Source of the DNA: Asterias rubens
Lineage: Eukaryota
Direction: 5' to 3'
DNA: 64,000 nucleotides
NCBI RefSeq assembly: GCF_902459465.1
Contig: NC_047068.1
Coordinates: forward strand, 15,624,001 to 15,688,000
Below, in pieces: positions 4,913-45,322 of this stretch. Position 1 is the stretch's first letter; the number at the start of each line of letters is the position of its first letter. Made by a program: the position numbers and the translations under genes. Below the pieces are notes generated by a model. It saw only the letters and a list, made by a program, of their open reading frames with translations. It was not told the DNA's origin and did no database searches.

Positions 4913-7900
4913 TTTAGCACGCCATCTTGGTCATGTTCCCTGTTTTTAATAACAGTTATGAATGCTAACGTTCATTGCGCATGGCACCAGACTATTATTT
5001 TGTCCAGCCTCAGTTTGGTTACAATGAGTTGGAATGGAGTAAATTCAGACCACACCGTGATAAAGGTCTATCTAGCCCACAACTCAAATAATTACTATAT
5101 CTATGGCAAAATAAGTACATCACAAAATAGAAATTGACATTTTCCTTTTTCTTCAAAGAGTTGACAAGGGAATAACTTGAACTTTACATACAGCTTAGTA
5201 TACAAATTCATGGCAACAGGCAACACACAAAATATACTGGATATAGACACATAATACACGTATAGCACCTTTTTCAAAACTAAAAGCACTGCTCAACCAG
5301 TGCATTTAATTACACTTTCTACATGTATTTGAAACGTATATACTGACTTTTTTTTAAAGGTCAAACAATTGTGTCAGAAATTAATCTGAATGTCAGGACA
5401 GTGTTTTATAACTTCATTTGAAGCACAACATCCTGTGTGGAATCACATAATAGTTTTAAAGGAAACGTAGCAAGTGTGAGGTAGGAAAGCCCGATGTACA
5501 CTCTAAATGAGAACGGTTGCAATGAATGTCATATCAGGGCTTGAATAGCCTATGAGAGGAAAATCTATAAGACCAATGCTCAGAATGATTACGGGCCCAA
5601 TTGCATGGCTCGTAAGCAAAGAATCTGCGTTTGCGTAAGCAGGGAATTCCATGCTTACATGTCAAGCATATGTAACGGGTTAGCAAGGAATTTTGGCTTT
5701 AACGCTTGTGCACTCCACGTACATGTGTTACTAGGAATTCTGCGCTTACACAGCTTAGGCAGAAATTTGGCGCTTTTAGGTAAGCAGAGTGTGATCACAA
5801 GCGGGATTCTGTGGTAAGCAGAGCCAAACATGCATACTGAGTGTTACAAGTTTTGTTGAGTACAAGGGATGACAACGACCATCATGGAGGTAATGACATA
5901 AATACACATGATGCACATGGTGTAGGCTTTAAAGCTTTCAGTTTTCAGTACATTTTTCAGATTTTTTCGCAAGGGCAAAAAGAAATCAGAATTTGGAATA
6001 ACATACAGGAAGATTGTCATTCCTGCTCATTGATTTTAAAATAAACACTACTGCCATTCCCCAAGAGAATTGTTTCCATCTGAAATATTGTAATAAGTAT
6101 ATTTCACAATCAGACACTTTATATGCCTATTTCACGCCTCATGCCTTTCGCACCAGACTTCTCTTTCAAGTGAATTTCTGATGAGGTTCATTTATCATTA
6201 ATGGAGAAAATCAAGTGACTTAAAGATCAAACAAATTGCCTCATATTGTGCATGAATCTGTTTATGGTAATAGCACAATCTGCACTTGAATTATTCATAC
6301 TTAAAGATTACTATGGATTAACCCTCTTGACATTTCCATGGCTTTTGAAGGACCAGGCTAAAAGAAACAAATAGTCCGGCCCCTACTGCTTAGGACTGAA
6401 TGACATTTGAGTGTAGGGTTGCTAGGTCAGAACATTTACTATTTGTTAAATGTTGTACTGACGTTGGAATGAAAAACAAACGTATTCCAGCAGGTGCTGT
6501 GTAACTAATCATATCAACTCAACCTCAAATATGCGTTCTCTCCCGTCTGTTTTTTGCTTTGATATGTTGCCTTTGCTTGTTTTTGTACAACCGTATGTAT
6601 AGTGCTGTATCCCATAAGCCTCGACTTATTCAAACAGCCTCCTTATTAATCACAACTTGGGTGTAACGAACATTCAGTATCATTATTCATGTTTAATCTT
6701 TGCTTATATTGTACTAACTATAAAGTAATCCAAATCATTCAGTCTTTTCTTATACAGAATAAATTTCAATGGATTGAAATTATGAGAAAAAAGGGACAAT
6801 ATGATTTTTTTTTTAAACTCTGTATCAGGCCTGATGCTTTACATATGCAAAAGGAGGCAATTGCCCCCTGGTCATTGCTTAGTGCCCTTTGAATGGTTCA
6901 AGTACAGATTTAAGTTTGACTCACTCGGGTGCCCTTAGGAGAAATTGCCTTGCCCATCCTTGCCCTATTCAACCGTGCAGTAGCCTGCTGTATTTGAAAT
7001 TGAAGCAACCTTGTGCTGTATTAACACATGCCTTTAAATGATTGATAAAAGGACGACACTGTCCAAGTCAGTGACACTACTTCACAATCAGAATAGAGCA
7101 TTTTCCCCCCACGAACTGTTCTGCTCTAACATCCAATGTTTAATTTATGTATTCCATTTGCACTTCGTCAAGCCTCATCAGCCAATTCTTTCAAACGATA
7201 CCCAATACCTATTTGTGCACACTCTAATCCAGATTAGTATTATCTGCTCTTCACTTTTCCATATTGTTGAGTGCCCTGAGCGTCACTGCGAGACGGATTA
7301 TGTGCTATAATGATAGCCACTATTATTATGTATATGATAAGTAATATCAACTACTATAACTGAGAAATATTCCTTTCTGAAATGCTGCCATATGCAAAAA
7401 ATGTGCTCACGTTCTGTCCTTAAAAAGGCAAGGGAAATGTCAAATTTAATGATGTGATGTACTCATTTTCCAATAGATGGAATCCTCAAGTGGGGAAATA
7501 TAGGTCTCTATAACCTGTTAGAATAGTGTAAGTTACCATTGTATTCAATACCCTTCCAACGCAAATTTGTTCATCATCTCAAATATCCGATGACATCATT
7601 CTGAGGAAAATGGGACTGTGCTTTTTTGTACGGGGATGTTTTGTTTCATTTAGAACTTTCAAAGATATTCAATCAATACTGCCTTGGATTTAACCTTTTG
7701 AACTGATGGCAAATTCCTCTTTGGGGTGTAAAGATGTATTAGTTATTGATATCCAATGACACCACGTTTCAATGGCATACCCATCTTACGTGGCCATACT
7801 GTAATGCCGAACTAGACGATGGAAATTAATCATTCTTTTCAAATGTCCAAAAACAAACGACAAATATACTTGTAGGAGGCCTACTTTCAAAGATGTAGAA

Positions 7901-24300: not shown

Positions 24301-25987
24301 TAAAACTTTTTGTCAAGGCCTTTCTTGCTCTACATTGGGTTCAAAGATTCGCACCGAGCCGATCCAACAGATATCCCAAAATACGGACAATTCGCAGAGC
24401 GTTTTGGCAATGGTGAGGCGGGTATGGGAGTGATAGAGGATTGGACTCCGTCAAAGTATAACCACTCTGATGTCGTTGTTCCGTGGTATTTACCCGATAC
24501 CACGGCAACCAGGCAAGACATAAGCGCTCAGTACACTTCAATCAGCAGATTGGATGCAGGTATTTCTGGTTGAATTCTCTTTTAGTATTGGTGGTGAAGC
24601 AAAAATTACAAGGATACAAGTCACAAATTGTACATTTTGACATGGTGTTTTGGCTGGTTACCTAACTCTAGTTAGCATAATTTTGATGCGCTTAGCTACT
24701 TTTGGCTTTTAAGCTTCTCTATGATATTGGGCCCTAGACTCGGCAAGACCCAACAAAGTTGTGCTAGAGGTTGGTTTGATGCCTATAAATTCTCACAACT
24801 ATCTTTACTAACTACTACCTTTTTGGACCAAAAGTCACTAGACTGATGAGGCATTTCTAGTCTAGTCATTGTCTCATATCACATTTTCTGTCTTACACTA
24901 ATGTTCAAATTCAGTGTTGTAGCTAGAACAATTTTAGTTGTGGGCTGTAGATCCAATTTAGTCCATCAAGAGGGAGCAGTTTAACAAAATTATTTATGTA
25001 TAGATATGAGTGCAATCTGGGAGAAATCTGTGTTGGGCGGCACAGTGCATTTTGTTAACAAAATTTGTTAACTCTGGGCAGGCCCGCCCTGCACTGTCCA
25101 TCGTGGCTACAACACTGTTCAAAGTACATAATTGTCTTATATTCATACATGATATTTTTTAATTCCCTTTTTGCAACACAGGTGTTGGCATGCTTCTGAG
25201 TGAACTGAAATCCTTTGGCTACCTAAACGATACACTCATCATCTACACGGCCGACAATGGCATCCCCTTCCCCAACGCCAAGACCAATCTCTACGAAACG
25301 GGAATGGGTGAACCGATGCTGGTCTCCAACCCTTACAACAAGAACCGCTGGGGGCAGTACAGCGATGCGATGACTAGCACCACCGACATCGTGCCGACCG
25401 TCCTAGACTGGTTCGGGGTCAAGTTTCCAGATTACAGTCTCTTGCGTAATAAAGTCACCCTGACCGGTAAATCTATGTTACCGCTCACGCTGTCCGAGCC
25501 GGCGAAAGATTGGGACGTTGTGTTCTCCAGCCACGACTTTCACGAGATAACAATGTCGTACCCAATGCGTGTAATGCGAAATAAGCAATACCGCCTCATT
25601 CATAACATGAATTACCGTGCGCCGTACCCCATTGCTCAGGATCTTGCGTCATGCCCGACGTTTGTGGATATTCTAAACAACACCGCGGCTGGTAAGCCGA
25701 CAAAATGGTTCAAGACGTTGGATCAGTATTACTACCGCCCGGAATGGGAGTTGTACGACCTCTTACACGATCCCAAAGAGACAATCAACCTGGCCGATCA
25801 GCAAGATCACAAAACGACGTTGGGTAAGATGCAGAAGGCTATATGTGACTGGCGACATCTTACAAATGATCCATGGAGGTGTTTTCCCGACGGTGCGATC
25901 AATGGACCTAAATGTATTGATCTCCATAATGAACCACCTAGTGAAAAGTACACCCAGGAGCAAAACCTTGACACCATCAATGAATAA
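21359..25987 (+). CDS. SGSH: N-sulphoglucosamine sulphohydrolase (sulfamidase). Exons 21359-21455, 22322-22588, 23486-23636, [24031-24263 or 24318-24559], 25182-25987; 517 or 520 aa
   Basis: Signal peptide, RNALVIIADDAGFE, formylglycine motif CSPSR...LTG ([22 protein letters not shown]), [39 protein letters not shown]. All junctions are GT-AG with consistent phases 1,1,2,1. Confidence 0.96.
21575..21695. mobile_element. Small MITE in SGSH intron 1
   Basis: Inverted repeat GTATGGCGCCACCACTTTC (21580-98) / GAAAGTGGTGGCGCCATAC (21669-87). Confidence 0.7.
22618..22918. mobile_element. Rearranged (inverted plus forward) copy of the tRNA-like retroposon with a 14-bp target-site duplication
   Basis: AAGTCGTAGATAAT at 22604-17 and 22919-32; 43-bp perfect inverted repeat 22613-55 / 22747-89; A24 run at 22721-44. 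Confidence 0.8.
24031..24263 (+). CDS. SGSH: SGSH alternative exon 4a (DPHRC...FC type)
   Basis: Acceptor CTCTTCACTAG, donor GTACCT, 233 nt, phase 2 in / 1 out; encodes [14 protein letters not shown]...SRMDQ. Confidence 0.9.
24318..24559 (+). CDS. SGSH: SGSH alternative exon 4b (DSHRA...FA type)
   Basis: Acceptor TTTGTCAAG, donor GTATTT, 242 nt, phase 2 in / 1 out, open frame; encodes [14 protein letters not shown]...SRLDA. Confidence 0.85.
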
Positions 25988-28481: not shown

Positions 28482-29262
28482 ATAATAGAGCTTAACTGCG
28501 GATTAAATATAGGGTCAACCATCCAGAGCAACACAGTACAACAAGTTCATGTCACATAATATTGCTGAGACAATGCAGGGCTTGGAAAGTCGAAAGGAAT
28601 CAGGCATGGCCCGCGTACCATAAAATAAAAATGATAATTCTTTTACGTGTGGCGGCCTTAGCGCGCTGCTTGTATGCGTTAACGCGACATTCACGCACAC
28701 TATTACGAACAAATAACCCTATTTGCGTCATCAATGTTCCAAAAGAACACGGTACGCACCAATGAAAAAATAAACCGCGCGCAAAAAAACAACGCGCGCT
28801 TGGAATTGCGCGCATTGAAAATTTAATTCAAACAGAACAAACAGAAAATGTATCATGCGTGGTTTTAAATGCGGATTGGACTTTAAACGTACAAATCGCC
28901 ATGTTTGTAGGACTTTTGTTGACCTTTTTTATAACTCCGCTTCACCAATTCATTTTAAAATCTTATTCTGGTTGTCTTTCTTTTTCAATGTCTTCACAAG
29001 TTCTATTTTTTTGCAAAGGGTGTCCGAGCTTTTTTGTTTCAATCAACGTAACGCCAGGTGAATAGCAGTTCTTCATTCAACAAAGGATTTAACTTCAACA
29101 ATGGGCATAAAAACGACGAAGTTTTAACACGCTGCATTTTGTTATGAGATTGTTCGGAAACTAATGATGTTGCAGTATTTTCTTGGGCTCTTACAACAAT
29201 CTTTCGTTAATAGCATGCTAGTGGTCGCTAAGCCTGTATTTTTTTGAATGGACTGATGGAAG

Positions 29263-29317
29263 ATGCGGTTGCAACATTTTGCCTACCTCATCATTGGTGT
29301 CTTTCTCTTTACGTCGG
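29263..29317 (+). CDS. Receptor exon 1, signal peptide MRLQHFAYLIIGVFLFTS
   Basis: Hydrophobic N-terminal peptide; strong donor GTAAGT, phase 1. Confidence 0.75.
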
Positions 29318-32300
29318 GTAAGTCCAGATTAAAAAAGTAAAAAATAAACGAAAGTTGTAACATAAAAAAGCTTTTTGTAGACAACTTGATACATGCCTTC
29401 TTGGTTCAACAATTCAATCAAGCATACCAGGTAAATATGCGTTGCACTTACAAAGGTTTCCTTGATTATGGGGGCATATGACAATATCTATTGAGGACAA
29501 TAAATATGTAGGGGCCCATCGTATTGAAACTTTACAAAGGGCACCACATGTTTTATTCCAGGGCACACCAACCCTGAGATGCCAGTTTCCGTTGCACTAG
29601 CTGTACTGATGATGCATGTAACGGAGGAGTCCAAACCCGGGATATGGCCTGAAGGGTAACCTCGCTGTGGCCCGTGGGTGCCTATGGCTAAATCGAGGGC
29701 CTGTCAAGTGACTCAAGACACGTTTTCGCGTCACATTTATACCAAGTCTATAGCTACCATGTTTTCTGGTTATTGACGTGCAAACATGGTACCTAGCCTG
29801 CTAACTGTAGAATTTAACAACACTGACAATGTATTAGGATAATTAGGACGAGTCTTGGAAACTGAGATTTATATCCAAACGTGAGAAGGAAGAAATCCCG
29901 ATGAGAAAAAATGATTCACTCATCCTCTTCATTAATTCTCAAACAATCTCGATCCTCCAGAAGACGGTCTGCGCATACTGATCAAAATGTCTTTTCAGAA
30001 CCACCTTAACTCAAAAATGATAAGAGATTAACGTTATTATGGTGTTGTATACCGCAAACCTCACTAATTTCAAATCCTACAAAGTTTCAAATCCTACAAA
30101 TCTCGATTCTGAAAAAAACAGGTTTGGATGCTAATAAACACCTTTCCCCGGAGATGTCGGACGCCCTGCAGCTCCTGAGGCTGACAGAACGGATGCGTTT
30201 CGGCGCGATGTGCCTGCAGGAGAGGTACTGCACCCACGCCGAACTGCTGGGGTTCGGGTGGGAGGAACAATCCTTGGATACCGCGGTGCTGAACCGATTC
30301 TGGCACACGTACTCCTGCACGTTTTTAGAGAATGTCTACTTGTGTCCAGGTGACTGAGAAATTGGTTTAAAATAATTTCATCTTACAACATCCCAAAGAA
30401 CTATTGGGTCCGATTTCATAGCTCTGCTTACTTGCCGCAGAATTATACAATTACGACGCCATGTAAAGCACATGGGTTGTATAAGCACATAATTCCACGG
30501 TAAGAAAGCTATCAAGCCTAGCTTTCAAGAACAACACACCTGGGCCCAATTTTATAAAGCCTGTAAGCACCGAAACTTGCTAAGAAAAAATAGTATTGCT
30601 TATAGGTTTACAGTGTTGTGGCTGGTGCCCCGCTCAAGTTTTACTTAACAAAGAAACCTGCCGCGCAGTATTTTCTGCTTGAAATAAAGTCCAGTTCTAT
30701 ACAGTCCATAAAGTTATCAAAACATTATTGGTTGAAATTATTCACGAATAGCAAAGCATCATCATTACGGTTACATAAATTGGGTTACAGACAAGGAAAA
30801 ACCAAGCTACTGAAAGCTTTTTAATGGTCACGCAAATATAATGTATTGCACGAGTGTTTTTTTATTACGAAAATAATGATATAATGTAAAGTTTGAGTTT
30901 TTTGTATAGATCGTCCACGGTTTGGTTGGGGTGCTGTGTCATTGAGAAATGCAATTAATTGTGTTCCTCTTTACATATAAGAAGGGGTATAAATTGCCCC
31001 ATACTGCATGTAAGCACTGGGGGAACGCTACTAAGGACATTTAGTTTGTTGTGTACCTTTTCTAAACTGTGTTCTTATCTTAATTTCGATGTAAAAATAC
31101 CGTGTTTATTTACTTATTATTTGATCTGATTGACAAACTTTGCTAGTGAAATGTGATAAGGATTAACACTAATGAAATAAATGTATGAAGATGATGTTTA
31201 ACGCAACGTTACAATGTCAATCACGGTTTACAGTGGACGGGGGTTGGAGTGCATGGGGTGAGTGGGGAGACTGTCACGTGACCTGTGGGGACGGAACCAA
31301 GATGAGACAGCGCATCTGCAATTGGCCCGAACCCCAAAATGGCGGCAATGAATGCCACGGGCAGACTACTAGCGTTACGAGCTGCACAGTGATTCCGGCA
31401 TGCCCACAGAATGGTAAGGGATCTGGCAACCGAGAATCATATAAGAACTATAATTGAGTTTCTAGTATTTAATGCAGGGCCCACTTGCTAAGCAAAGATG
31501 CTAAGCACACACAATTTATAGAGCTGTTACTTCTATTATTGAGTATACACAAAGATGCTAATCACAACAAAATTATGCTCACCAGAATAGGTTACAAGAC
31601 AAAAAAACGAAAGAAGAAAAAAAGATCAAATACCCAGCTGGCCAAGCTTTTCAATTCCATTACTGATTATATACACTCCAAAGTAAAAGTTGTTTCAGCA
31701 AGAAAAAGCCATCGAAAACTACAGATGTTGAATACTTTTGATCTTAACAATCTGGCTCATTAGTGGTATTATTTTGCGTATAAATCTAAAGTTGGGGTGA
31801 GATGGGTAGGTCGAAACAATTTCGGGAAACACAAATTTAAATGTTTTATAATAATTGAACATTCTGAATGCCTATAAAATGTCATTGTGTGTCTTTATTT
31901 TGTGTAGAAACAGAGGGTGAATCTATCGAGGATTCAGTACAGAAGAAAGCATTTAAGCTTATGGAGCCATTCAACACTAACGATGCTGAACTACGAGACA
32001 CTTGTATGACTGGACGGTGCAGCTATCAACAAGTACTGGAAATGGTCACACCACGGAACCTTGCGGTACAACAACTGTTCACTTGTTTTATGTCCCTGAT
32101 AAGTTTAAGTCATACACAATGTTCTTTCAGTTAACAACTGGGGCCCACAAGAAGCGGCAAGTTAGCTAAGACCCTTAGACAGAACCTTGCAGTTCAACAA
32201 CTGTTCACTTGTATTATGTCCCTGATAACTTTAAGTCATACACAATGTTCAAGAAGCGGCACGTTAGCTAAGACCCTTAGACAGAACCTTGCAGTTCAAC

Positions 32301-35300
32301 AACTGTTCACTTGTTTGATGTCCCTGATAAGTTAGTCACACACAATGTTCTTTCAGTTAACAACTGGGGCATACACGAGGCAGCACAGCTAGCTAAAGAT
32401 AAAAAATTAACTATGAAAATAGTGACTTGGTGGGAACAACAATATCAAATCTCCCATGGAGGAGTGTTAGCTGTGAAAAGAGCCAGTGTGGTATCGACGT
32501 TTCGAACAGTGTACTCTGCTGGTATTCAGAAGAAAACACCACTTACAATAGCTAGGTTCAAATGCATAAATAAAAGAGTATTCCTTGCTAGATCATTACT
32601 TTATGGCATATCAGTAGAACCTAATTAAAGCATAGAGAAAGGACCACAGAAAAACAACTTTACTAGAACAACATACATAATTTGTTTTTCTGTTACATAA
32701 TGGCCTTATTGTCATCGTTAGAGATACAACTTTCATGTTACCATCGTTACAGAAGAGTTCCAATGTTTCCATAAAACAGATTTAGTGTGACTTTTGTGGA
32801 TGTTGGGTTAAATTAAAAATGTTGCAATTTCAGGATACTTACTGGACCAACTTGAACTGCTACAAGCATTTGGAAGGGTGTGCGGGTGAGTTACTTCGTC
32901 ATGCATCCGTTGAAGGAAAAGTCTTGGCTCTAGATTAAATCTGTTTAAATGATTAGAAAACATGTTTAGTTGTCTCGCGGAGTAGAGAGTATCACTTTCA
33001 TGCAATGAATTCCTTGTGGTCTACAGTGGTTTTGTTAAAGGAAGTGTTTGCGTGTTTGCGGTAGTCGGCCATTTTGAAGAGAAAAAAAACAACCGATCGT
33101 CTGTGCTACGATCACGCTAATTCCTCAACCACCATGTTCAATTGAAAGTAAAACGTATTTCCATTACTTCAAAAACAATTCTAAGCATTAGGTCTACAAA
33201 ACATAAAACATTAATTTAAGAAAAGAACCGTAGGTTTAAATTCGGAACCACTCCAATTCAATTAGAGATTACCGTAACATCGTGCTACTGCAAACCTTAC
33301 TCAAAAATTTAAAAAAAATAAAGTTTGCCGGAAAAAAACACATAGACAAATCAAACTTGAGTTTTAACACAAATTTTCCTCCGACACCCTACTAATAATA
33401 GTTGAGGGCGGTTGGTCTGAGTGGAATCCGTGGAGCAGTTGCTCGTCCCAGTGCGGTAGCGGGAAGGCGTACCGATCACGACGGTGTAACAACCCACAGC
33501 CACGCCACGGCGGGCACCACTGCAGGGGACCCGAGTACGAGGAGGGTGCATGCGTTGATGATACGTGTGCGCTGGCAGGTGAGTCGGAAAAGGACTTACT
33601 GTTGGTTATTTGAAACGTTCGATTGTTTTAATCCTATATATAAAGGAAGATGTATACAATAAAACTATCATGTGAAAATTTCACCTTCAAAAGGTGGTAG
33701 AGTTTTTGAGATTTCGCCGAAAATCTGGAGCGAATAATTTCGCCTTTTTTTGCATAGGCACATCACTTCAAAAAGTTTCTCAAAATGCTTTATCCATCGA
33801 AAGCTGATGTATGCTTCTAAACAACAGTTTTGATTGTCATGAGTTGTAAAAGTGATTACCAAACGTAGGCCTATACACTCCAAAGTTTGTTTGTAAATGC
33901 CATCATCTGAAAGAAATGCATTACACTGTCCAAACTGTATACTTGTATTTAAAGGACAGTATGTAACTGTGTTGAAATGTTTTGTCATCCTTGTGATACT
34001 ATTGCATGCAAGCGCATTTTTATTTTGGTCACAGTTGGAATTTTCTTGACTCCGTGGTCGACATGGACAGCGTGTTCTACCAGCTGCAATGACGGGTTGA
34101 AAACGTCGAGTAGACGGTGTCACGGCGGCGACGCGTGCGACGTTGGTAATGGACACGAAGCCTCGATACTGACTCGAGAGACACCCTGCAACTCTGGTCT
34201 TTGCCCAGGTATGAACTCGTAAAACACCTTGGTTCTTCGAATCAGTTTTATCCGGGGAAAAAAAGTTGGGTGTGATTTAGAATGTCTACATAATATCTGG
34301 TATGTGTTCAGGAATAAACTCGTAAACACTTGTTTCTTCGATTCAGTTTTATCCATTTATAAAAAGGGTTGTGTGACTACCGGTACATGAAATAATGAAT
34401 ATGAAGTAGGCCTAACATATCAAAAAAACAAAAAACAAGTTTCCCTATCCACACCAGTGGTGTACCTACTCTACACCATTGACGTAGAGAGGGTAGGGGC
34501 AGGACGGCCCAGTGTCCTTCAATTGCAAAACGGCCTAACTCGAAAGTGTTGGTCAACTAGATAATGTTGGTAAATTGAGGCCTTTTATCCATTTCAAAGT
34601 TTCAAATGTTTCAGTATGTATGGATGTGAATATAACATGTCTAATATCATCCTCTGTTACACTTTCATCCCGTTTTTATGCGAAGTGCAGCTGATCTATG
34701 TACTGGCTTTTCTCGAAATGTCATTTTCGAGTTGGGCTGTTTTGGCATGGAGGGGCCCAGGAGCCCTTTTCCCGCTCAGAACTCTTGTCCCCTATTTTGC
34801 CTCTAATGAGATTGAACAAAAATGCACAATTGAATGGGTCGATAGCTTTTTGCCCAAAAAACTTTGTTTAAAAACTGACTTTGTTGACTTACTTGGTAGA
34901 GCATGGAGGCTGGAGTATGTGGAGTGAATGGACGGTATGTACGGGGATGTGCAGCAAGGGACGTCAGGTGAGAGAGAGGACGTGTAACAACCCTCGTCCC
35001 CAGGGGAAAGGGAATGACTGCCCCGGAGTGTCGGCCATGTTGAAGAAATGCACCCATTCCGCACCGTTCTGCGAGGGACTGCCAAAAAAAAAGCAACGTA
35101 TGTTTTATAAGTTATATGTTTCTTTGAATTAAAACCACCTACCGATTTTCACGGTTTATTTGTAATACTTCTGTTTTACTGATATAACAGAACAAAATGA
35201 GTATACACATTTTGTCAGAAATTTCACGAAGAGACAAAATACACGAAAAACAATTTAAAAAAAAACCTTAATTATTTGAACCTTTTGGTGGTTTCGGTTT

Positions 35301-38300
35301 AGTTGAACGGTATCTTATGATTTACAAAGTTACGGGTCTTAAAATTGTATCATTTCTTAATTGTTCTAAGTTGACGACCGACAAAAAAGCCCAAAGAACC
35401 TGGAATTTCGCTTTCAAGAAGAGCAAAAAATCGGGGGGTTTTCGGCGACCACCCGTTGAAGATACGGCTGGCACATGAAAGTGCCAATCATAAAAGCTTT
35501 ATGAAATTGCGCCCTGGGCTCGATTTCGCAAAGCAATACTTAATTCATTGTAAGACAAATTGTCAGTATTTGTATTGTAACAATCACATTTAAAATATAT
35601 AAGCAACTACACATGTATACGATTGATTTGCAGTGATCAATCTTTATCTCTTTGTGAAATCAGCCCCTGATTGCAGGTTACACATTTGCATTAAGATCAA
35701 TTCTAATGAGAACAACACAATCAACGTTGCACTGACATTATTTCAATTGCATTTGGCTATTAACCTGTTGTTTTTGTTTGATTAAAGTTCACGAAGCGTG
35801 GTCCCAGTGGTCTGACTGTAGCTCCCTCTGCGACGGAGGGATGCGAATTCGACATCGAACCTGTCCAGAGCAGAAGCACGCATGCTCGGGGGAGTTGTAC
35901 GGCCTGGAGGTCTGCAACGATGACATTCCGTGTCCGGGTACAAAAAATATATAATATAAACAACACACACACACACACACCCCAAGATCAAAAGACCCCA
36001 AGAAACAAACAAAATAAACAAACAAAAACAAACAACGTAAAAATAATGAGTCATCGCTTTCAATTGTTTTTAACCAGCAATGGGAGAGAACCAAAGTCTA
36101 TTCAATTTTAAAATAAAAGACAAAAAGTAGAGTTCGGTTTAAATTCTTGAAAATCGACAACAGCCAAGTATAATGACATAAGCATTATTTTTCAGAAATT
36201 GTACAAACGATCATGATGTATTTCTTAAAACAGTCAATGGAAAAATGGCTGTTATAAAACCATGAAAATATCTGTCTTATTTTGACTCCGATAGCCAACG
36301 GTGGATGGAGTGAGTGGTCACAGTGGTCAGTGTGTACTGTAACGTGTGGGGACGGGGAGACTCATAGGTTTCGACTCTGCAATAATCCGAGGCCAGAGTT
36401 CGGAGGCAGCAGCTGTGAGGGCGAGTCAGACGAGAAGAAAAGCTGCGTCGTCCAAGACTGTCCAGGTAGACATATAAATTGGACCCTCTTAATCACTGTC
36501 AAAACAAAGCCACGCCATGATTTTTTTGGCACTAACACTGCTCATGGGCAAAATGAGGGAACATCGCGCCTTTTGTGTATATGCCTACATTTCTACCTCC
36601 ATGATTTAAGCGTATTGTGCATAATACTCGGGGGGGGGGGTGCCCAATAGTCCATTTACTCGAAAGCATAATTTTAACGATCAAATTTCTTGTGAACGGC
36701 CATTAATAAGAGGACATGTTCCACCATCCTCTATGGTTCCACAATGTTAACAATATGTTTATATTAATCTTTATTAGTGTTACAAGTACCACAGACCATT
36801 ATAATAATGATACGGTTTGTAAATCGAGCGAAACAGATAAGTTACATAAATACATCGTACGTTAGCCTTCTTTCAATGTAAATGGTGTCGTAAACTTTAA
36901 TCTGCTTCTTAGCAAAACAAAACGACACTAAATAAAAACAATTGGAAACCAGCGTTCAGTGTTTAAGGGTTTTCTTAATTAAAACACCAATTATTGTATT
37001 TTGTTGTTATCTCCCCATTATCACAAAGCTAACACCCCTACTTGGGAATCTTGGAGCCCATGGTCTCAGTGCTCAGCAACCTGCGGCGGGGGATTCAATG
37101 AACGGGCGCGGGTGTGTCTGCCTGGTAGCGTCACGGTGGGTGAAAACAGGCGAATGTTGAAGCCACCAAGCTCAAGCTGTGTGGGGGAAAACACGCAGAT
37201 GAACGTGTGCAATTTCTTGCCTTGCCCAGGTGGGGACAATATTATTTTTCTGAGATTTTAAATTTGTACTACGGAGCTCTGGAAGTGCCATCTAACTAAT
37301 ATTGAGATCATGAGACAGTTTACTGCAGGATGGTTCAACTCAATTGAAACTCACATTATTTTATTTCAATACTTCATGAATATTTCCTAAAATAGAAGTA
37401 ACACAACTTTAAGCAGACATTAATTAAGTACGGAGGCACTAGAACCCGAGGCTTGTGGCGAGGTGCCTGATGGACAGAACAAACAAAGGCCAAGACAAGA
37501 GAAAAATAGACCTGCCGGCCTCTGTGGCATCTGTGAAAATCCTGGCCTGCTGCAGTAAATTATTTCATGCTCACTTTCAACAGCTTTGTTTTTTGTTGAG
37601 ATTGTTGGTCTGGTCTTTCTTGTTTTCAGTGAATGGCAACTGGGCGAGTTGGGGAGATTGGGGCAGCTGCAGCAAGACGTGTGGTGAGGGTGTGCTGAAG
37701 CGAGATCGGACGTGTACCGATCCAGCCCCAGCAGGAACAGGCGAGGTATGCGGTGGCTACGGCACGGAAATGCTGCTCTGCTACACACAACCATGTCCAG
37801 GTATTCCATTTTTTGTTCTCTCTTTTTTTAATACTACCAATGATAATGATACTGGAAACGAGGAATGAGATTTGCTGGTAGGAGCAAAGAGTCTCCATCA
37901 AAACTCATTCATTTGGGAACCAAAACAAGGACCATAGACCAACATTGATCTAAGATGTTTTGACGAAAGACAACCGGACTGCAGTGGACTGGAGACAGCA
38001 GAGCTATGGGCAGCAATGCGGGACATAGAGAGGGCAAATGTAGGCCTACATTTCTGTATAAAAAGTAGGCCTACTGATACTTTTTCGCATTGAATCATTT
38101 TCCAAAAAGAGTAGGAATCAAGTCATTAATTTGAATTAAATCTACAATGAGCTCACTATACAACTAATGGCCAAGATAGTGACAACATTAGGACCGGTTT
38201 TAAAGACCAAAAAAAGAGCTGAAGACGAGCAATGGAGTCAAGGGGGAAAGCTAAGTTACTTGATGAGCGAGCCTGGCTCTTTTGAGCGAGGCTTTAAAAT

Positions 38301-41300
38301 CTCTCCCTCCACTTTCCCCTAATTTTAGCCACTGATGAGATCGTCCGTACATTCGACGGCTCTTCGTTCATGATGTACCGTCGTGCATCCAAACCCACCA
38401 AACACCTCCTACTGTACATACAGTTCAAGCCGAGTACACTGAGCGGTGTGCTGGCGTTGCGTAACGAGGAAGGTTCCGATCAGACCGTGTCCGTGGGGTT
38501 GGCGGACGGCCACGTCAAGATGTATGCTAAGGTCGGTGAAGCGGAGAGCGAGGTTGGCAGCGAAAAACAAGTAGTAAGTTAGACTGAAACCCTGTATTTA
38601 TCCGCAAAGATAAAGATAGGTACGTACAAACCAGCGATGTCATTATATACAATGATTTCATTGGATAAACGTTCACTGACGTAAGCCTTCCATACATATA
38701 TAATAGTGTTTTGATTGGTCCGAAGTGATGTCAGCTGTTCGTTGGCCACGATCCGTACATGATCGTCAACATATTGACGTGGGCTCGAGGCTGGTATCTG
38801 GCGTAATTCACGAGCCTCGTAGTGTGACAAGAAGTTCAAGCTGTAGTATTAGGTTTACAATGTAAACTTGATGGGAAGTTAGCACCATTACTGTATTTGT
38901 GTGCGTGCTGCTTTGTGGAAAAGTTATGCAGTAAGGATTGCTCAGAAACACTATACTTCTTCATGCATGAATTTTTAACGACGAGCAGGTAGAATTTCAT
39001 TTTGATACTTGGATGATTTTGACACAGGTCCTTGATGAATGGAACCGCATCGAAGCCACCATTAGTGGCGGGAACACACATCTAAGATTGAATGACGGCA
39101 TCCCGACCTTCAGTAACTTCACCATTGCACTACCGGCACACTTAGACTGGGACCTGCCCATGTACATCGGCGGTGCGTTGCCTCAACTCTTCCCGAAACT
39201 GGCTCCCGAGTATGTAGGTAAGACTTGACTTTATCTTTGGACTGTTCAACCATTGTCAATCCACTGCAGTGATGAAGGCTTCAGCATGATGTCTCTAAAT
39301 GTCTCTATGTTTTGTTTGTTGATACTGCTTGACTAAATCCCCAGTATTGTTGCAGCTCGTCTTTCCATCCTTTTATGTGGTGCCATCAAGTGTCGTCCCG
39401 TCCATAAACAGGGCTCGATTTCACAAAGCAATTAAATCAATCGTATGTACGGCACCTAAATGTACCCCGAGCCCTAAATGTAGCCTGACCTAAATGTAGC
39501 CTTGTCAGTATTACTATAGTGATTTGTTATGTGACATTACACTTTACTTAGCAACTACAATTTATTTGCAGTTGAGATCAAAGCTCTTTGTTAAATCGTC
39601 CCCAGTATAGTTGCTTAGCGCAAAATGGTTGTATACTCTGCAGCGTTTGTGTCCGCCCAGCTCAATGTGCTCTTCCCTCTTTTCACTGCTCCGACATTTC
39701 TCTCTGCATGTTAAGGTTTCAGGGGCTCGATCTCCGCACTGCGAGTGAACTACAACATGTACACTCTTCACGAAGTTAACGCAGAGTGGACTGGAATCGG
39801 TCTGCCCTATGTGTCTTTTAACGTTGGCTTTGGGCAGGCAGGTAAGACTGTAAAATATAGCGAGGTTTAGCTGCACGTAACGCGAGCAAAATGTGAACGT
39901 TAACGTCAATAATTGTGTGGTTTCGGGGTGACGTCACCACTTTGGGCTTATTGCATGCATACGCATGACGTCTGCGCGCACGTACGTACCCGACGTGAAA
40001 AATGGTAATCTCACGTATGCTAAAAACGGGAGATTTTAATGACCCAGTTTTCTGACGTTCGCGTTCACGTTCACACGGAACGTGCAGCTAAACCTCCCTA
40101 CTATTAGAGATAGTACACCGTACGCAAGCGGCAATCTATTGCCCACAATCCCTCTCAATATTTGTAGAGATATCAACATTTTGTTAAAATATAATACATT
40201 TGTTTGTTTCACCGACTAGATAAAAAAAAGGCTATACCAAAAGTACCAATGAAGGATGACTAGAACGTATCAAATTATGTTTAGGTTTCTTTTGTTCCTT
40301 TTGTGAATTTACGCGTAATGCCTTTTCAATGCACTTCAATGCGTTGATTGATGAACTCAATTTTCCTTTAATAAAGAACCGATACTACAATATCATAATT
40401 TTGCGATGACACCTGAGGTGACTCTCAAATACATTTTACACAGATTAAGTATTATATAGACGTTGTTGTTGATGGTGGTGTCAATAAACATCATGGACAG
40501 GATAACTGGAGATTAATGCATATGATGTAATACTGTCATTATTCATCCAGACATCAACTCCCAAGTACCCGTCTTCACCGGGCAGGAGTTTACCTCCCTG
40601 CCGTGCAACGCGTCGACAGACGGCAAGCTATCCATCAAAGTCATCCTCAAACCGTTGGCTCCAGACGGTCTTATCCTGTACCATCCAGGCCAGGTTCCTG
40701 AATCGTTCGTCGCACTAGTTATGCTGGATGGGCACATGACACTGTATTTGAATCTTGGGTTCAAGACCATGTCCGCAAAGAGTGCCGAAGTAGATGTAAG
40801 TTCGGGGTGTTTTGAGATGTATTGTAAATAATTGTATACACTTTCATAAAACAGCTAACGCCTAATATCACATGTCTGGACGTCCACCTTGAGGTAAGGG
40901 CTGTCGACTCAACCCATCTGTCACCTCTGCAGCCGATTCACAATACGCTAGGATTAATTCTATCTCGAGTTAGGACGACGAGTAACTCGTCCTAAACTTA
41001 TAATGGGTTCAATGCCTCCTAACTTCTATTACGGAAATTAACTTGTCCTAAGTCCTACGACTAATACTAAAGTTAGGAAGAGTTTGGTCAAATCGACGAC
41101 AGGGGCAAGATTGCCACCAATATCTCCTTGGGCTGAAACAGGGTTCTATATAGGCAGGGGGTATCACCCACTATAGGGATCTGGGCCCAATTTCATAGAG
41201 CTGCTTAAGCACAAAATTGTGCTTAAGCAAAAAAGTCCTTGCTTAGTAAAATCAGATTACCGGCCAAGACTCCACTAAATTGTTATGCTAAGTGAACAAC

Positions 41301-44300
41301 AGCTAATTACCAGTCACAATCAATGTATATGGCATAACATTTTGGCCAGTAACATGTGTATAATAAGCGAGCTGTTTTCGTGCTTAAGCAAAATTTTTGC
41401 TTAAGCAGCTCTATGAAATTGGCCCCTGGGTGGTGGGGAATGATGCATTCCTTCCCAACTTCAACAATAATACGAGATCAAATTTGAAAATATTGAAATC
41501 AAGACGTGTGTTCTTAATTTCTAGTTTCTTAAAACATTATTCATTTTACAAATTGACATGCACGGTTGAACACATCCGTCATTTACCAAATAAATATCTT
41601 TCCTCCGATCAGCTCTCGTATTGGGTCATAGTTCAACTGACTATCCTGGGTGAGAACGCAGAGATGAGGATCAACGGTGGCCCGGCCATCCAAGTAACCG
41701 TCGAGGGGAGAAACTTCGTGTCTTCGGACAGAGTGGCCGTTGGGAGCGTTCTGGCACCGGACGTCACCGCGGTGTCCATGTCGATGGACGTGTACACGGG
41801 TTACGTCGGTTCACTCTACGAGGTGACGATCAACGATAATGATTACTTGCTGCGTGATGCTGCTCTCAGCAGGCACGACGTATATGTCGACTCGGAGTCC
41901 ACAACTCTTGCAGGTATACATAGACTTTTCCCCAGTACCGAGGGGCGATGTTTGTTTGTTTGTTTGTTTGTTTGTTTGTTTGTTTGTTTGTTTGTTTGTT
42001 TGTTTGTTTGTTTGTTTTTTGTTTGTTTGTTTGTTGAGAAATTTGTTTGGAATTGTCTGCATCATGCAGCGTACGAAATTCATCCACAACAAGTGTTTTA
42101 TGTTTTTATATACAGCACACTACCGCGAAGTTAGAAAACTACGTCACGAAATCGTTGCACTCCAATGCAACTACGCCAACGTCTACACCGAGAAACCGAC
42201 CATCACGTGGATAATGGGCGATAAAATGATTGAATCCGACCACAACTTCAAAGTTTTCGAGGTAGGAAAGTTGATAATAACACGATCTCTTCCAATGAGT
42301 TATGTCACAGTCTTTAGATTGAGTTAAATTAAGTTTATTTTTGTCATTTTGCAAAAAAAATATGTAATGGCCTGACGTTTCGACCCTAGCTGGGTCTTTC
42401 TCGAAGGCAAAAATATTTTGCATACAAATTAAACCAATGTGAGAATACTGAACTTTGTCAGTTACCAAACACATGTCCAGTGCCTTGAATTCTTACTGAC
42501 ATTATTTTACAGAGTATGTTTCAGCCCTACATGTCCTCGTTGCTTCTGCACGCCTTAGACACGGATAACGAGGGATTGTATGCGTGTGTGGTCGGGTACC
42601 GAGGAAAGGCCATTCTGACCCACGCATTTGGGATTTCTGTCTTCGAACCACACCGTAAGTAAACATTCTTGCTAATACTCGTGGCCCAGGGGGTTGATCT
42701 CCACAAACTCTTCATAACTTTACAGGAGTAGTCATAGACAATGCTTTAGAGCTAGGCCCAGGAGTACTGGTCCTATGAAAAACTCTAGTCTTATCTCTTT
42801 GTAAAATCCGACCCAGGGGTCGATTTCACAAAGGGTTAGGACTAGACCTAGATATTACAAACTTAAGACTAAATATCCTAAGTAAGAACGAGTAACTCGT
42901 CCTAACTCGAGATAAGAGCAGTCATAAAACTCCGTAGAGATCCACCCCAGGTATACGTTTTGATGGTTTTCGTAGTACGAAATGCCAAATATTGTCAAAC
43001 AACAATACAAACAGATCGACGTTTTTAAAGTATTAAAAAAAAGGAGCCCATCATAATATTTTAAACTTTTGTACTACTCTGCATTTTTAAAGATACTGGA
43101 ACCTTAAACATAAAATGGGTGTCACTATTCTGATTCTAGAAATGAACCTCAATATGAGAGAGTAATAGACCTTTTACACCATTTTTACGTAAGTTTTTTT
43201 TTATTTTGTTTATAGTGACTTGTATTTGTTCATAATTTTCAACAGGAATAATACATAGTTTGGTAAATGTATGCATGACTCCCACATGTGAAAGGTGCTC
43301 AGGGGGCTCGAGAAAGTTGCTGGGGTAGTGTAACTTGATGGATTTGCTCCATCAAGAAACTCGATTTCCACAAATTATAGCCAAAGTTTGACAAGTAACC
43401 TTCCACAACGGGTCTGGGTTTGTTTTTTTAGGTGTGAGTTTTGATATGCAGTCGGCCCTTGGTTATGCCGTCATGGCATATGCAGGACTCATCTGTGGTT
43501 TCGTCATCAGTGTCTTTGTCCTGTCATGCTTCAAATGTCTCAGACTAAGGTAAAACGGTTGTTAGTAATGACTTTTAGAAACAACTTACAAAAACGACAA
43601 AGGCTATATTTTCGAATCCGCGGCTTCGGTTTTTTGATTCTGCTTCAGGATCCGTACGTCCTCTCGTGTGGTGAAGCCCTGAGCACGGTACGCAAAGCAC
43701 GCGCAATTGTCACTAATAACCGCGGGGCAAAGCTAGCCTGAGCAGAATCTGGAGTCGAAGCAGTGGTTTCGAAAAGAGCCAAAATTCGTACATTGCGCAT
43801 AAATCCAGCTCAAAAGACACGTCCAAGTGTGCACGAAAATGGTGTTGTGGTACGAGAGTACACAATACTATTAGTAGTATTTTTGACCGCGTGAGGGCGG
43901 GCTACTATGGACCAAAATACGAAACAAGTCAAACAAAAATTGTCTGATTGTGGATATTGTTATTATTTGAGTATCTAGTAGAAACGATCACCTAAGAAAA
44001 TTGTACACCGCTTGAATAAATGGCACCGCGCCCACCGAAGCCCGCCGAGCAAGTTTTTGAGTTCGGTGGTGTTGATTTGTCATTGAGTTACGTATCTTGT
44101 TTATCAATATTCCACCTCTGCACCCCACTCAACATCCCCTCGGCCTGCATACAAAGTTAAACATTTTAAAATCTGCTTCACACACAGATTTTTCTTCTTT
44201 GATTTGATGTACGAGTCCATCATTTACTACCTTGGCTTGGACTCGTGGGCGTGTATGAGGGAGGGAAACATGTTCGACCATCACACCCTCATGACGGTCG

Positions 44301-45322
44301 ACGCCACCTATCACAAGGACTTCTCGGCTCGGGAAGAGAAGATTAAATTCGACCAAGCACTGGCAGAGGAGAAGAAGAACAAGAAACAGCTGGAGGCAAC
44401 TACAACCAGTCAAACATTGGTGCCAAAACTCAGTCGAAATGGAGTCTCGCAGGATGTGGAAAAGAATATGGATACAGCAGACGATACTGGGATTCAAAAT
44501 GGCGGGAAAGACGCAGAATCAAACAAGGTTTCAAAAGTGTACATCATGGCACAACGTGATGAAGTTCCGGGCACATCAAATGCTCCAAAGCAATATGACA
44601 GTGCGGGGAAAAGACCGTCATCCAGAAGTCAAAGTAATGACATCATTGTCGAGGTAGAAGGCCAGAACCTGACCCGGCGTCCAAGCGAGTCTCTGAGTGA
44701 CAAGGAACTCAATCTAAGACGCCTGTCTCACGAGATCGTTTCGGGTAGGCCAGAGTCTTCTACATCGGGGTCCTCCCTCGGGAGGGCGGACTCCGCACCA
44801 CCGGCAGACGACAACCATGTCCGGGAAGAACCGAAGGAAGAGCCGATTTATGTCAACATTGACGCCATCCGGGAGAGACAACGACTGAGCAAGGCTTCCA
44901 CAAGCAGTTTGAGGGTCTCGAAGGGGGAGTCCTCGGAGTCATTCGACACTGATCATCCGCCGGGGTTAGATTCACCCAACACCCGGGAGAGACTTCAGAA
45001 AGAAGAGCCGGTAGAAGTTGACATGGATGCTGTCCGTGAAAATTGGCAACGGAGTATAATGTCGATACACGGAGCCAGCCCCCGGGCGTCCACCGAACAC
45101 AAAGAGGGTTTGGTCTATGCAAGCAGAGGGGCCGACGGTGCTGACTGGGAACCCGTCAAGGACGTCGTCAAAGACGACAACCCAAGTGGGAGGAGCTCAG
45201 GCCTGAGGAGCTCCGATGGCTCTTTGTCACCAAAGGACGAGGACGAAGCCAGCTCATCGGACAATAGTACAGGAGAAGATGCCAACAAGAACGCATCAGT
45301 TAATGACGATGGTAGTGAATGA
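29263..45322 (+). CDS. Uncharacterised type I membrane protein, about 1520 aa: SP - Gla-like - TSP1 - Gla-like - 7xTSP1 - LamG - LamG - Ig - TM - acidic Ser-rich tail
   Basis: 21 GT-AG exons with fully consistent phases, total 4563 nt: 29263-29317, 30122-30349, 31234-31413, 31908-32065, 32834-32885, 33402-33578, 34035-34208, 34900-35097, 35788-35937, 36295-36465, 37029-37229, 37630-37800, 38329-38573, 39028-39217, 39716-39841, 40551-40795, 41613-41913, 42116-42261, 42513-42654, 43432-43549, 44188-45322. Confidence 0.85.
31234..37800 (+). CDS. Eight symmetric phase 1-1 exons, each encoding one thrombospondin type-1 repeat
   Basis: Each has the WxxWxxCSxxC...R.R.C...C...C pattern (e.g. GGWSEWSQWSVCTVTCGDGETHRFRLC). 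Starts at 31234, 33402, 34035, 34900, 35788, 36295, 37029, 37630. Confidence 0.93.
38329..41913 (+). CDS. Two laminin G-like domains (exons 13-17)
   Basis: FDGSSF...IQFKPSTLSGVL...W.RI...MYIGG...GFRGSISALRVN and FTGQEF...ILKPLAPDGLILY...W..V...VAVG...GYVGSLYEVTIND LamG patterns. Confidence 0.8.
39858..40100. mobile_element. MITE with AGGTTTAGCTGCACGT TIR
   Basis: 16-bp perfect TIR at 39863 / ending 40095, extendable to TA ends; starts 16 bp after the exon-15 donor. Confidence 0.75.
41184..41425. mobile_element. MITE family A with CTG TSD
   Basis: CTG|GGCCCAATTTCATAGAGCTGCTTAAGCA...TGCTTAAGCAGCTCTATGAAATTGGCCC|CTG. Confidence 0.85.
41950..42033 (+). repeat. (GTTT)n microsatellite
   Basis: About 20 units with one interruption. 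It produces the spurious FVCL/KQTN ORFs in the track. Confidence 0.95.
42116..43549 (+). CDS. Ig-like domain (exons 18-19) and transmembrane helix (exon 20)
   Basis: ALQC...ITW...LLLHALDTDNEGLYAC (Ig C-W-DxGxYxC); TM AVMAYAGLICGFVISVFVLSCF followed by basic KCLRLR. Confidence 0.85.
42370..42408 (-). ncRNA. Minimal type I hammerhead ribozyme motif of the Penelope-like type (U3-A8 variant)
   Basis: Minus strand GCCT-TCGAGAA-A-GACCC AGCTA GGGTC-GAAAC-GTC-AGGC: stem I, core, stem II, GAAA, palindromic ACGT stem III, GUC site. Sister copy at 48018-48062. Confidence 0.55.
42689..42950. mobile_element. Two adjacent MITE family B copies
   Basis: GGGGTTGATCTCCACAAAC...TTTGTAAAATCCGACCC then CAG|GGGTCGATTTCACAAAG...GAGATCCACCC|CAG. 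Confidence 0.7.

Follow-up and report, generated by a model that had tools for sequence, protein, structure and literature searches.

A probable glutamate-poor relative of the Gla domain in a TSP1-repeat receptor gene of the starfish Asterias rubens

Can a Gla domain keep its scaffold when most of its carboxylatable glutamates are gone? The question is raised by a gene of the starfish Asterias rubens on the forward strand of contig NC_047068.1, within a 64,000-nucleotide (nt) stretch of DNA that was analysed as a whole and is called the window here; coordinates are window positions. Two exons of this gene, exon 4 (31908..32065) and exon 5 (32834..32885), encode a 70-residue module (amino acids (aa) 155-224) that sits between the first and the second TSP1 repeat of the predicted protein and that we call module 2. 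A preliminary description of the window had seen in it a Gla fold depleted of glutamate, with an intron exactly where vertebrate coagulation factors have theirs. We conclude that aa 155-224 are probably a divergent Gla-domain homologue: a conserved, probably carboxylation-independent Gla-fold module that would act as a spacer or protein-binding unit of a receptor.

Sequence similarity and intron position

Exons 4 and 5 translate as ...AELRDTCMTGRCSYQQVLEMVTPRNLA | DTYWTNLNCYKHLEGCA; in the frame set by the splice sites they give ..TEGESIEDSVQKKAFKLMEPFNTNDAELRDTCMTGRCSYQQVLEMVTPRNLA | DTYWTNLNCYKHLEGCA. Inspection by eye confirmed the C-x4-C pair, the C-S-Y motif, the Trp at +19 and the intron at +15 from the second Cys, and the introns before, between and after the two exons are in phases 1, 0 and 1, all as previously proposed. 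Vertebrate Gla domains (factors X, IX and VII, prothrombin; PF00594) share with the module the series Leu-x3-Cys-x4-Cys-Ser-Tyr/Phe, an acidic residue at the Gla29 position and an aromatic-Trp pair 18/19 residues past the second Cys. The factor IX (FIX) and factor X (FX) Gla sequences printed by HMMER agree with what the preliminary description had quoted.

A phmmer search of all PDB sequences with the single starfish sequence placed the Gla domain of prothrombin first (E 0.17-0.7), in the register already described. This similarity alone is not significant; the profile of orthologues and the conserved intron, taken together, are above chance. Orthologues were collected by a phmmer search against 1.84e9 representative proteins, in which they were limited to Ambulacraria: Holothuria leucospilota (P0002, publicly named 'Coadhesin'), Ptychodera flava (P0003 and P0007), Acanthaster planci (P0005, 'ectin-like', a truncated model) and Anneissia japonica (P0006). 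A further orthologue, from Saccoglossus kowalevskii (P0008), was retrieved via its LamG region. In public records these proteins are called 'uncharacterized', 'coadhesin' or 'ectin-like', and the module is unannotated. It lies between TSP1 repeats 1 and 2 in every one of them. Across the alignment the Leu, both Cys of C-x4-C, the Tyr, a Pro and an Ala are invariant, followed by YW-x3-C-x6-C. The C-x4-C pair (Cys17-Cys22 in FX numbering, the disulfide pairing itself being predicted) is present in 6/6 species, and Y-W stands at +18/+19 past the second Cys in all five complete sequences. Word-based homologue searches returned almost only their own queries and found no sea-urchin or brittle-star orthologue, and a search of the Asterias genome for paralogues with the module-2 profile gave only chance matches or repeats.

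Profiles built from five and from six orthologues were searched against 177,635 distinct PDB sequences. With the five-orthologue profile, 32 of the 33 matches at E<=10 were Gla-containing chains: FX (6.6e-5, 26 bits), FIX (0.004), prothrombin (0.006) and PRRG2 (0.04) among them, the sole non-Gla match being Crov588 (E 0.12). The six-sequence profile gave the same result; over both runs there were 31-33 matches, with E 0.002-0.004 for FIX, 0.006-0.01 for prothrombin and 0.03-0.04 for PRRG2. The profile alignment also extends, weakly, into the last part of the FX propeptide. In the reverse test, the Pfam model PF00594 matched the Anneissia module (residues 182-212, model positions 8-38 of 41), with E 0.033 in the full-length protein and 7.8e-4 in the excised piece.

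The position of the internal intron provides evidence independent of the sequence score. Exons 1-3 of the factor IX gene F9 are ~88, 164 and 25 nt long, as derived from the numbers of patients per exon and per coding nucleotide in Table 3 of PMC8911121, and the border between the Gla and EGF domains of factor IX lies at residues 92/93 (PMC8911121). Since 88+164 = 252 nt, or 84 codons, the intron between F9 exons 2 and 3 is in phase 0 after prepro residue 84. We take exon 1 to be 88 rather than 87 nt long, which is consistent with the Gla/EGF border. Prepro residue 84 is mature Thr38, that is Cys23+15, and Trp42 is the fourth residue encoded by the 25-nt exon. In the starfish gene, the phase-0 intron likewise follows the 15th residue past the second Cys, and the fourth residue that the mini-exon encodes is again the Trp. 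The coagulation-factor intron position claimed for the starfish gene is thus borne out.

The same position and phase recur in the orthologues: ..KEEA|gtaagt .. ag|NKYW in Anneissia, where the mini-exon is fused to TSP1 repeat 2, ..NSLA|gtaaga in Holothuria and ..ASLA|gtaagt in Saccoglossus, each of the latter two followed by a 52-nt mini-exon. The Acanthaster exon also ends after ..DLA. A phase-0 intron at Cys+15, the F9 position, is therefore found in five ambulacrarian species. We estimate that position and phase would match by chance within a 70-codon module about once in 200 cases. The wider exon pattern is shared with vertebrate Gla domains as well: phase-1 borders, the phase-0 intron at Cys+15 and a mini-exon that starts three residues ahead of the Trp. 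The starfish mini-exon differs in being 52 nt rather than 25 nt long and in adding a C-x6-C loop.

The public annotation of Acanthaster planci (DF978550.1, 3001-9072) divides this orthologue into a 215-aa 'ectin-like' model, whose end coincides with the phase-0 intron, and a separate model of 1776 aa in which a Forkhead domain is listed as well. The mini-exon was not located between the module exon and TSP1 repeat 2 in this species, where the public model is split. The annotation looks like a gene model that was mis-split or mis-fused around the mini-exon.

Public reads mapped on 29200-35150 confirmed the use of both exons. A 2364-nt spliced contig from run X1 covers eight exons, and six of its seven joints are GT..AG, including 31413>31908 and 32065>32834. 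At the joint 32885>33402 the aligner cut two bases late, the true acceptor AG being 33400-33401. Six GT..AG joints in one contig indicate a spliced molecule, despite the guessed RNA label of the run. Exon 4 and the 52-nt exon 5 are both used in mRNA, on the basis of this one contig from one study, and the junction through the mini-exon that the preliminary description had pointed to is present in the transcript. Between contig and window 13 differences are listed, nine synonymous and four non-synonymous, and a synonymous T>G lies at 33403, near the start of exon 6.

Exons 4 and 5 might instead be a rarely used or non-functional insertion, with a main isoform that skips one or both of them. The junctions come from one assembled contig of one run, and two raw RNA runs with the same species label (X11 and X12) have no reads on any of the gene's exons in the mapped interval, only on intronic repeats. 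The neighbouring TSP1 exons lack reads in these runs too, however, as expected if the gene as a whole is weakly expressed rather than the module skipped. Omission of the 52-nt exon or of exon 4 alone would shift the reading frame, and the gene models of five other species have kept both the module, whose Cys, Tyr, Pro and Ala are invariant, and its exon structure. We regard skipping of the module in the main isoform as exceedingly improbable.

Predicted structure and the weighing of homology

An AlphaFold2 (AF2) model was computed from a five-sequence alignment (mean predicted local distance difference test score, pLDDT, 85; predicted template modelling score, pTM, 0.71). It has predicted helices at residues 7-25, 27-35, 40-46 and 50-65. 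The top Foldseek matches in the PDB were light chains of factor VIIa (FVIIa), with a root mean square deviation (rmsd) of 1.1 A over 33 columns and E 3.8. VIA-align paired model residues 25-64 with FVIIa 9-47 (Z 3.2), in the register of the sequence alignment, so that the predicted three-helix core may correspond to that of vertebrate Gla domains. In the fold search of the Swiss-Prot section of the AlphaFold database, Gla proteins made up 24 of the 30 top matches among 550,129 entries, and PRRG1, PRRG2 and PRRG3 were among the fold matches of the module. The matches, made with a predicted model only, range from 0.9 to 3.4 A rmsd over 29-39 residues, all with E >1. For about 35 residues such weak individual scores are expected. 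What counts in the structural argument, as far as a predicted model can carry it, is the enrichment and the shared register, not single scores. The fold check suggested by the preliminary description thus points the same way as the sequence: its top matches are Gla domains, individually non-significant and in one register.

Several observations weigh against homology with Gla domains. The 70-aa starfish peptide has no match in Pfam at E<=10. The PF00594 gathering cut-off of 27 bits is missed by the starfish module and by all orthologues, the best of which scores 14.8 bits. The Pfam model proposed earlier as a check thus matches the crinoid orthologue, below the cut-off, and does not match the starfish sequence itself. 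None of the structural matches reaches significance by itself (Foldseek E 1.6-7, VIA Z 3.2), each concerns some 35-40 residues of a small helical unit, and a wide VIA search with the module-2 model gave generic helical matches only (Z<=5.5). The AF2 model, computed from five sequences, may reflect Gla sequences that the network had learned. Two TSP1 repeats enclose the module, whereas known Gla domains are N-terminal and follow a propeptide. Expression is seen in a single contig, from a run for which even the RNA label is guessed. Finally, non-carboxylation and calcium independence are predictions, as are the disulfide pairing and the role proposed for the module.

On the similarity itself, these points would suit a small, unrelated four-Cys helical linker between TSP1 repeats whose C-x4-C, aromatic pair and intron position resemble those of Gla domains by chance or convergence. 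Single-sequence E-values are non-significant, the window peptide has no Pfam match, all fold matches have E>1 or Z ~3, short helical motifs with Cys are easily matched, and phase 1-1 module borders are generic for extracellular domains. Chance does not explain, however, that the orthologue profile improves the E-value ~2,500-fold over the single sequence and matches almost exclusively Gla, that the curated Pfam Gla model returns an independent reciprocal match, that the Swiss-Prot fold matches are dominated by Gla proteins, that sequence and structure alignments agree on one register, or that the internal intron is conserved in position and phase across Ambulacraria. An unrelated linker is an unlikely explanation. 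The earlier claim of similarity to the Gla fold is upheld by the profile and by the reciprocal match to the crinoid orthologue, the latter below the Pfam cut-off, and the module is best read as a new variant of the Gla domain, conserved across Ambulacraria.

Glutamate content and carboxylation

The glutamate count was anchored on the ungapped alignment from FX Cys17 to Trp41, with nine Gla positions (14, 16, 19, 20, 25, 26, 29, 32 and 39). The starfish module has Glu at one of the nine alignable positions, namely 29, in agreement with the preliminary description, which had noted that most carboxylatable glutamates were replaced. Over the six species, each module has Glu at 0-2 of the nine positions, and the residues that stand there instead show no conserved acidic character. 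At the Gla29 equivalent, five of the six species have E or D, with Asp in two. The survey of orthologues for retained Glu that had been suggested thus shows a glutamate-poor state conserved in six species, and this conservation indicates that it did not arise by recent decay. The N-terminal half of PROSITE pattern PS00011 reads E-x2-[ERK]-E-x-C, and Gla domains carry 9-12 Glu at gamma-carboxylated positions. The starfish T-C-M-T-G-R-C fails the E..[ERK]E.C part of the pattern, and the x6-[EDR]-x10-[FYA]-[YW] part is present. No RxxR basic cleavage site and no recognisable propeptide were seen ahead of module 2. The module thus departs from vertebrate Gla domains in its glutamate content (1/9 in starfish, 0-2 in the orthologues), in the omega-loop sequence, propeptide and RxxR site that it lacks, in its score below the Pfam cut-off and in its internal place between two TSP1 repeats. 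That the module would be independent of vitamin K is suggested by the missing Glu residues and the missing propeptide.

The starfish genome carries a gene of the carboxylase type: exons matching PF05090 (HTTM / vitamin-K-dependent carboxylase) form a multi-exon gene at C21:6694766-6698415, with up to 93 bits. A canonical Gla domain was looked for in the genome in three ways, each with an insensitive query. A six-frame search with PF00594 gave no candidates, a search with the FX Gla peptide found none, and a DNA motif for E-x-E-C-x-E-E-x-C had 0 exact matches, with the 36 inspected of 44 one-mismatch sites being repeats or unrelated. Given the insensitivity of all three queries, a canonical Gla domain is 'not found' rather than 'absent'. 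In the collection of literature that was searched there was no match for 'Gla-like domain' and nothing on echinoderm Gla domains.

The carboxylase-type gene, together with the failure to find a canonical Gla domain as its substrate, would fit a module 2 that is still a vitamin-K-dependent substrate with few Gla residues, carboxylated at its remaining Glu (the Gla29 equivalent and those of the N-terminal helix). The E or D retained at position 29 in five of six species and the weak alignment into the end of the FX propeptide agree with this. Yet 7-9 of the nine Gla positions are non-Glu in every species and not kept acidic, the Asp at position 29 in two species cannot be converted to Gla, there is no recognisable propeptide or basic cleavage site, and the module is internal. 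The searches for canonical Gla domains were insensitive and other substrates may exist; invertebrate carboxylases are known to act on peptides other than Gla domains, as in Conus. Carboxylation of the module is highly unlikely in our assessment.

Under the preferred reading, a divergent homologue that does without carboxylation, the retained parts are the Leu-x3-Cys helix, the C-x4-C pair, the C-S/T-Y helix and the aromatic-stack helix (Y-W), along with the hallmark gene structure of phase 1, internal phase-0 intron at Cys+15, mini-exon and phase 1. In apo Gla structures, the helical core, the disulfide and the aromatic stack are the part that stays folded without calcium. In the starfish protein, the N-terminal omega-loop, which depends on Gla and Ca2+, may be replaced by a long helix (model residues 7-25) packing on this core, and the additional C-x6-C pair may tie the C-terminus of the module to the start of the next TSP1 repeat. 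Prothrombin, the best single-sequence match in the PDB, has a second Cys pair just past its aromatic stack, as the module has after YW-x3. The loops differ in length, with ~12 residues in prothrombin and 6 in the starfish module. Such a module would fold without vitamin K, gamma-glutamyl carboxylase or Ca2+. Its place is near the membrane-distal end of a predicted single-pass receptor, where it would be a rigid helical unit that binds proteins or acts as a spacer, not a membrane anchor that binds phosphatidylserine. The glutamate-poor state and the intron are kept in starfish, sea cucumber, feather star and acorn worms. This suggests that the module is an old, selected feature of Ambulacraria rather than a decaying Gla domain.

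The receptor gene and its first module

The predicted protein consists of module 1, a TSP1 repeat, module 2, seven TSP1 repeats, two LamG domains, an Ig domain, a transmembrane helix and a tail. Pfam recognises eight TSP_1, two Laminin_G and a weak Ig domain in the orthologues, with which the Asterias locus aligns colinearly, and the assembled N-terminus holds the signal peptide, module 1, TSP1 repeat 1, module 2 and TSP1 repeats 2-4. All exons are on the + strand. Exon 1 (29263..29317) carries the start codon and the signal peptide (MRLQHFAYLIIGVFLFTS-G) and is followed by a phase-1 intron; the contig covers it up to 29316/7 and joins it to 30122. Exon 2 (30122..30349), also in the contig, encodes the N-terminal four-Cys module 1, 75 aa long and spanning aa 20-94, without an internal intron in Asterias. 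Exon 3 (31234..31413) encodes TSP1 repeat 1 (PF00090, E 2.5e-13) and is likewise in the contig.

Exon 4, of 158 nt and covered by the contig, is the main exon of module 2, with aa 155-207 comprising the N-terminal helix, L-x3-C-x4-C and the CSY helix. It ends with ...TPRNLA in phase 0 and is flanked by ..tgtgtag upstream and gtac downstream. The phase-0 intron (32066..32833) separates it from the 52-nt exon 5 (DTYWTNLNCYKHLEGC-A), which supplies the aromatic-stack helix (YW) and the C-x6-C loop, ends in phase 1 and is flanked by ..tttcag and gtgagt. Exon 6 (33402..33578; PF00090, E 1.2e-12), present in the contig, encodes TSP1 repeat 2, which adjoins the module directly (..GCA-VEGGWSEW..). The remainder of the gene (34035..45319) encodes TSP1 repeats 3-8, the LamG pair, the Ig domain and, after a transmembrane helix at ~43400-43550, a long cytoplasmic tail; it was traced by the contig up to 35097, by colinear tblastn of the Holothuria and Anneissia orthologues and by the list of open reading frames, and the exon limits past 35097 are approximate.

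The phase-0 intron contains a local tandem duplication of the splice-donor region. At 32022-32385, a segment made up of the last ~45 nt of exon 4 and the adjoining ~40 nt of intron recurs in two further copies within the intron. The two copies (32148-32231 and 32250-32333) are 95% alike mutually and 63% like the original, and the donor GCG|GTAC reads GCAGTTC in them. A second, 52-nt repeat pair lies in the same intron (32108-32159 and 32334-32385). Other intronic segments of the gene (30538-30570, 31557-31589, 30013-30101 and 33277-33301; for example GGGCCCAATTTTATAAAGC) have very high read depth in all RNA runs, with unlike flanks and odd joints that go back along the sequence. They resemble an abundant interspersed repeat of the short interspersed element (SINE) kind and are unrelated to the exons. 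Upstream of the gene lies a sulfatase (SGSH-like) gene at 22261-25984, on the + strand.

Module 1 has the motif AL.LLR[LP]..F...C-x5-C...FW.TY.C-x8-CP and a layout like that of module 2: a helix, C-x4-6-C, a helix, FW-x3-C-x7/8-CP and then a TSP1 repeat. In Holothuria (L016, 6156-6305 | 7135-7192) and Saccoglossus (L053, 2116-2173) it has a phase-0 intron three residues ahead of the FW/Trp and a mini-exon of its own, of 58 nt. Sequence comparisons were negative: modules 1 and 2 gave no BLASTP alignment with each other and hhalign E-values of 0.018 and 0.14 at a probability below 3%, the exon 2 peptide had no match in Pfam, and neither the module-1 profile against PDB and Pfam nor its AF2 model against PDB and Swiss-Prot had Gla matches. 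TSP1 repeats 1 and 2 are not each other's closest repeats, so a signal of tandem duplication was not seen there either. Because of these negative comparisons, the paralogy of the two modules is argued solely from the Cys/FW architecture and the mini-exon that they have in common. The N-terminus is where Gla domains canonically stand, and module 1 may be another copy of the Gla fold there, more diverged than module 2, although no statistical similarity supports such a paralogue. At 30182, within this module, the contig has C where the window has T, which changes Leu39 to Pro and yields ALQLLRP, as in Acanthaster and Anneissia (LLRP); the difference is probably allelic.

Known proteins share parts of this architecture. 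PRRG1-4 resemble the starfish protein in that they cross the membrane once and have a Gla-fold module in the ectodomain, and PRRG2 is among the sequences matched by the profile. The PRRGs are short, their N-terminal Gla domain is of the canonical, carboxylated kind and their tail has PY motifs, whereas the starfish protein has eight TSP1 repeats, two LamG domains and an Ig domain between module and membrane. Gas6 and protein S combine an N-terminal Gla-type module with a C-terminal LamG pair, as the starfish protein does, with EGF domains in place of the TSP1 repeats; the starfish protein differs further in being anchored in the membrane, with an Ig domain and a tail. A link to Gas6 or protein S through the LamG pair was considered and dropped: the nearest PDB sequences are those of neurexin and agrin rather than of Gas6, protein S or SHBG, and no specific relationship was shown.

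A more far-reaching origin can be imagined for module 2, not as a degenerate Gla domain but as a survivor of an ancestral carboxylation-independent helical scaffold, from which the chordate Gla domain would have evolved when it acquired a Glu-rich omega-loop and a propeptide that binds the carboxylase. The receptor would then have two such modules, the second and more diverged one being that of exon 2 at the N-terminal place usual for Gla domains, with a mini-exon likewise in Holothuria and Saccoglossus, and Ambulacraria would have a carboxylase and no canonical Gla domain. We put this forward as a rather unlikely scenario.

Gamma-carboxyglutamates define the Gla domain, which is usually regarded as having been invented by chordates in connection with vitamin K. 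A conserved, glutamate-poor homologue would mean that the helical scaffold can be used without carboxylation, and would make this scaffold as old as the divergence of Ambulacraria and chordates, or older. The module may serve as a natural Gla fold free of calcium, with which structures and lipid binding can be compared. It also adds an unannotated domain to a receptor family of echinoderms and hemichordates, with a practical impact that is likely to be modest.

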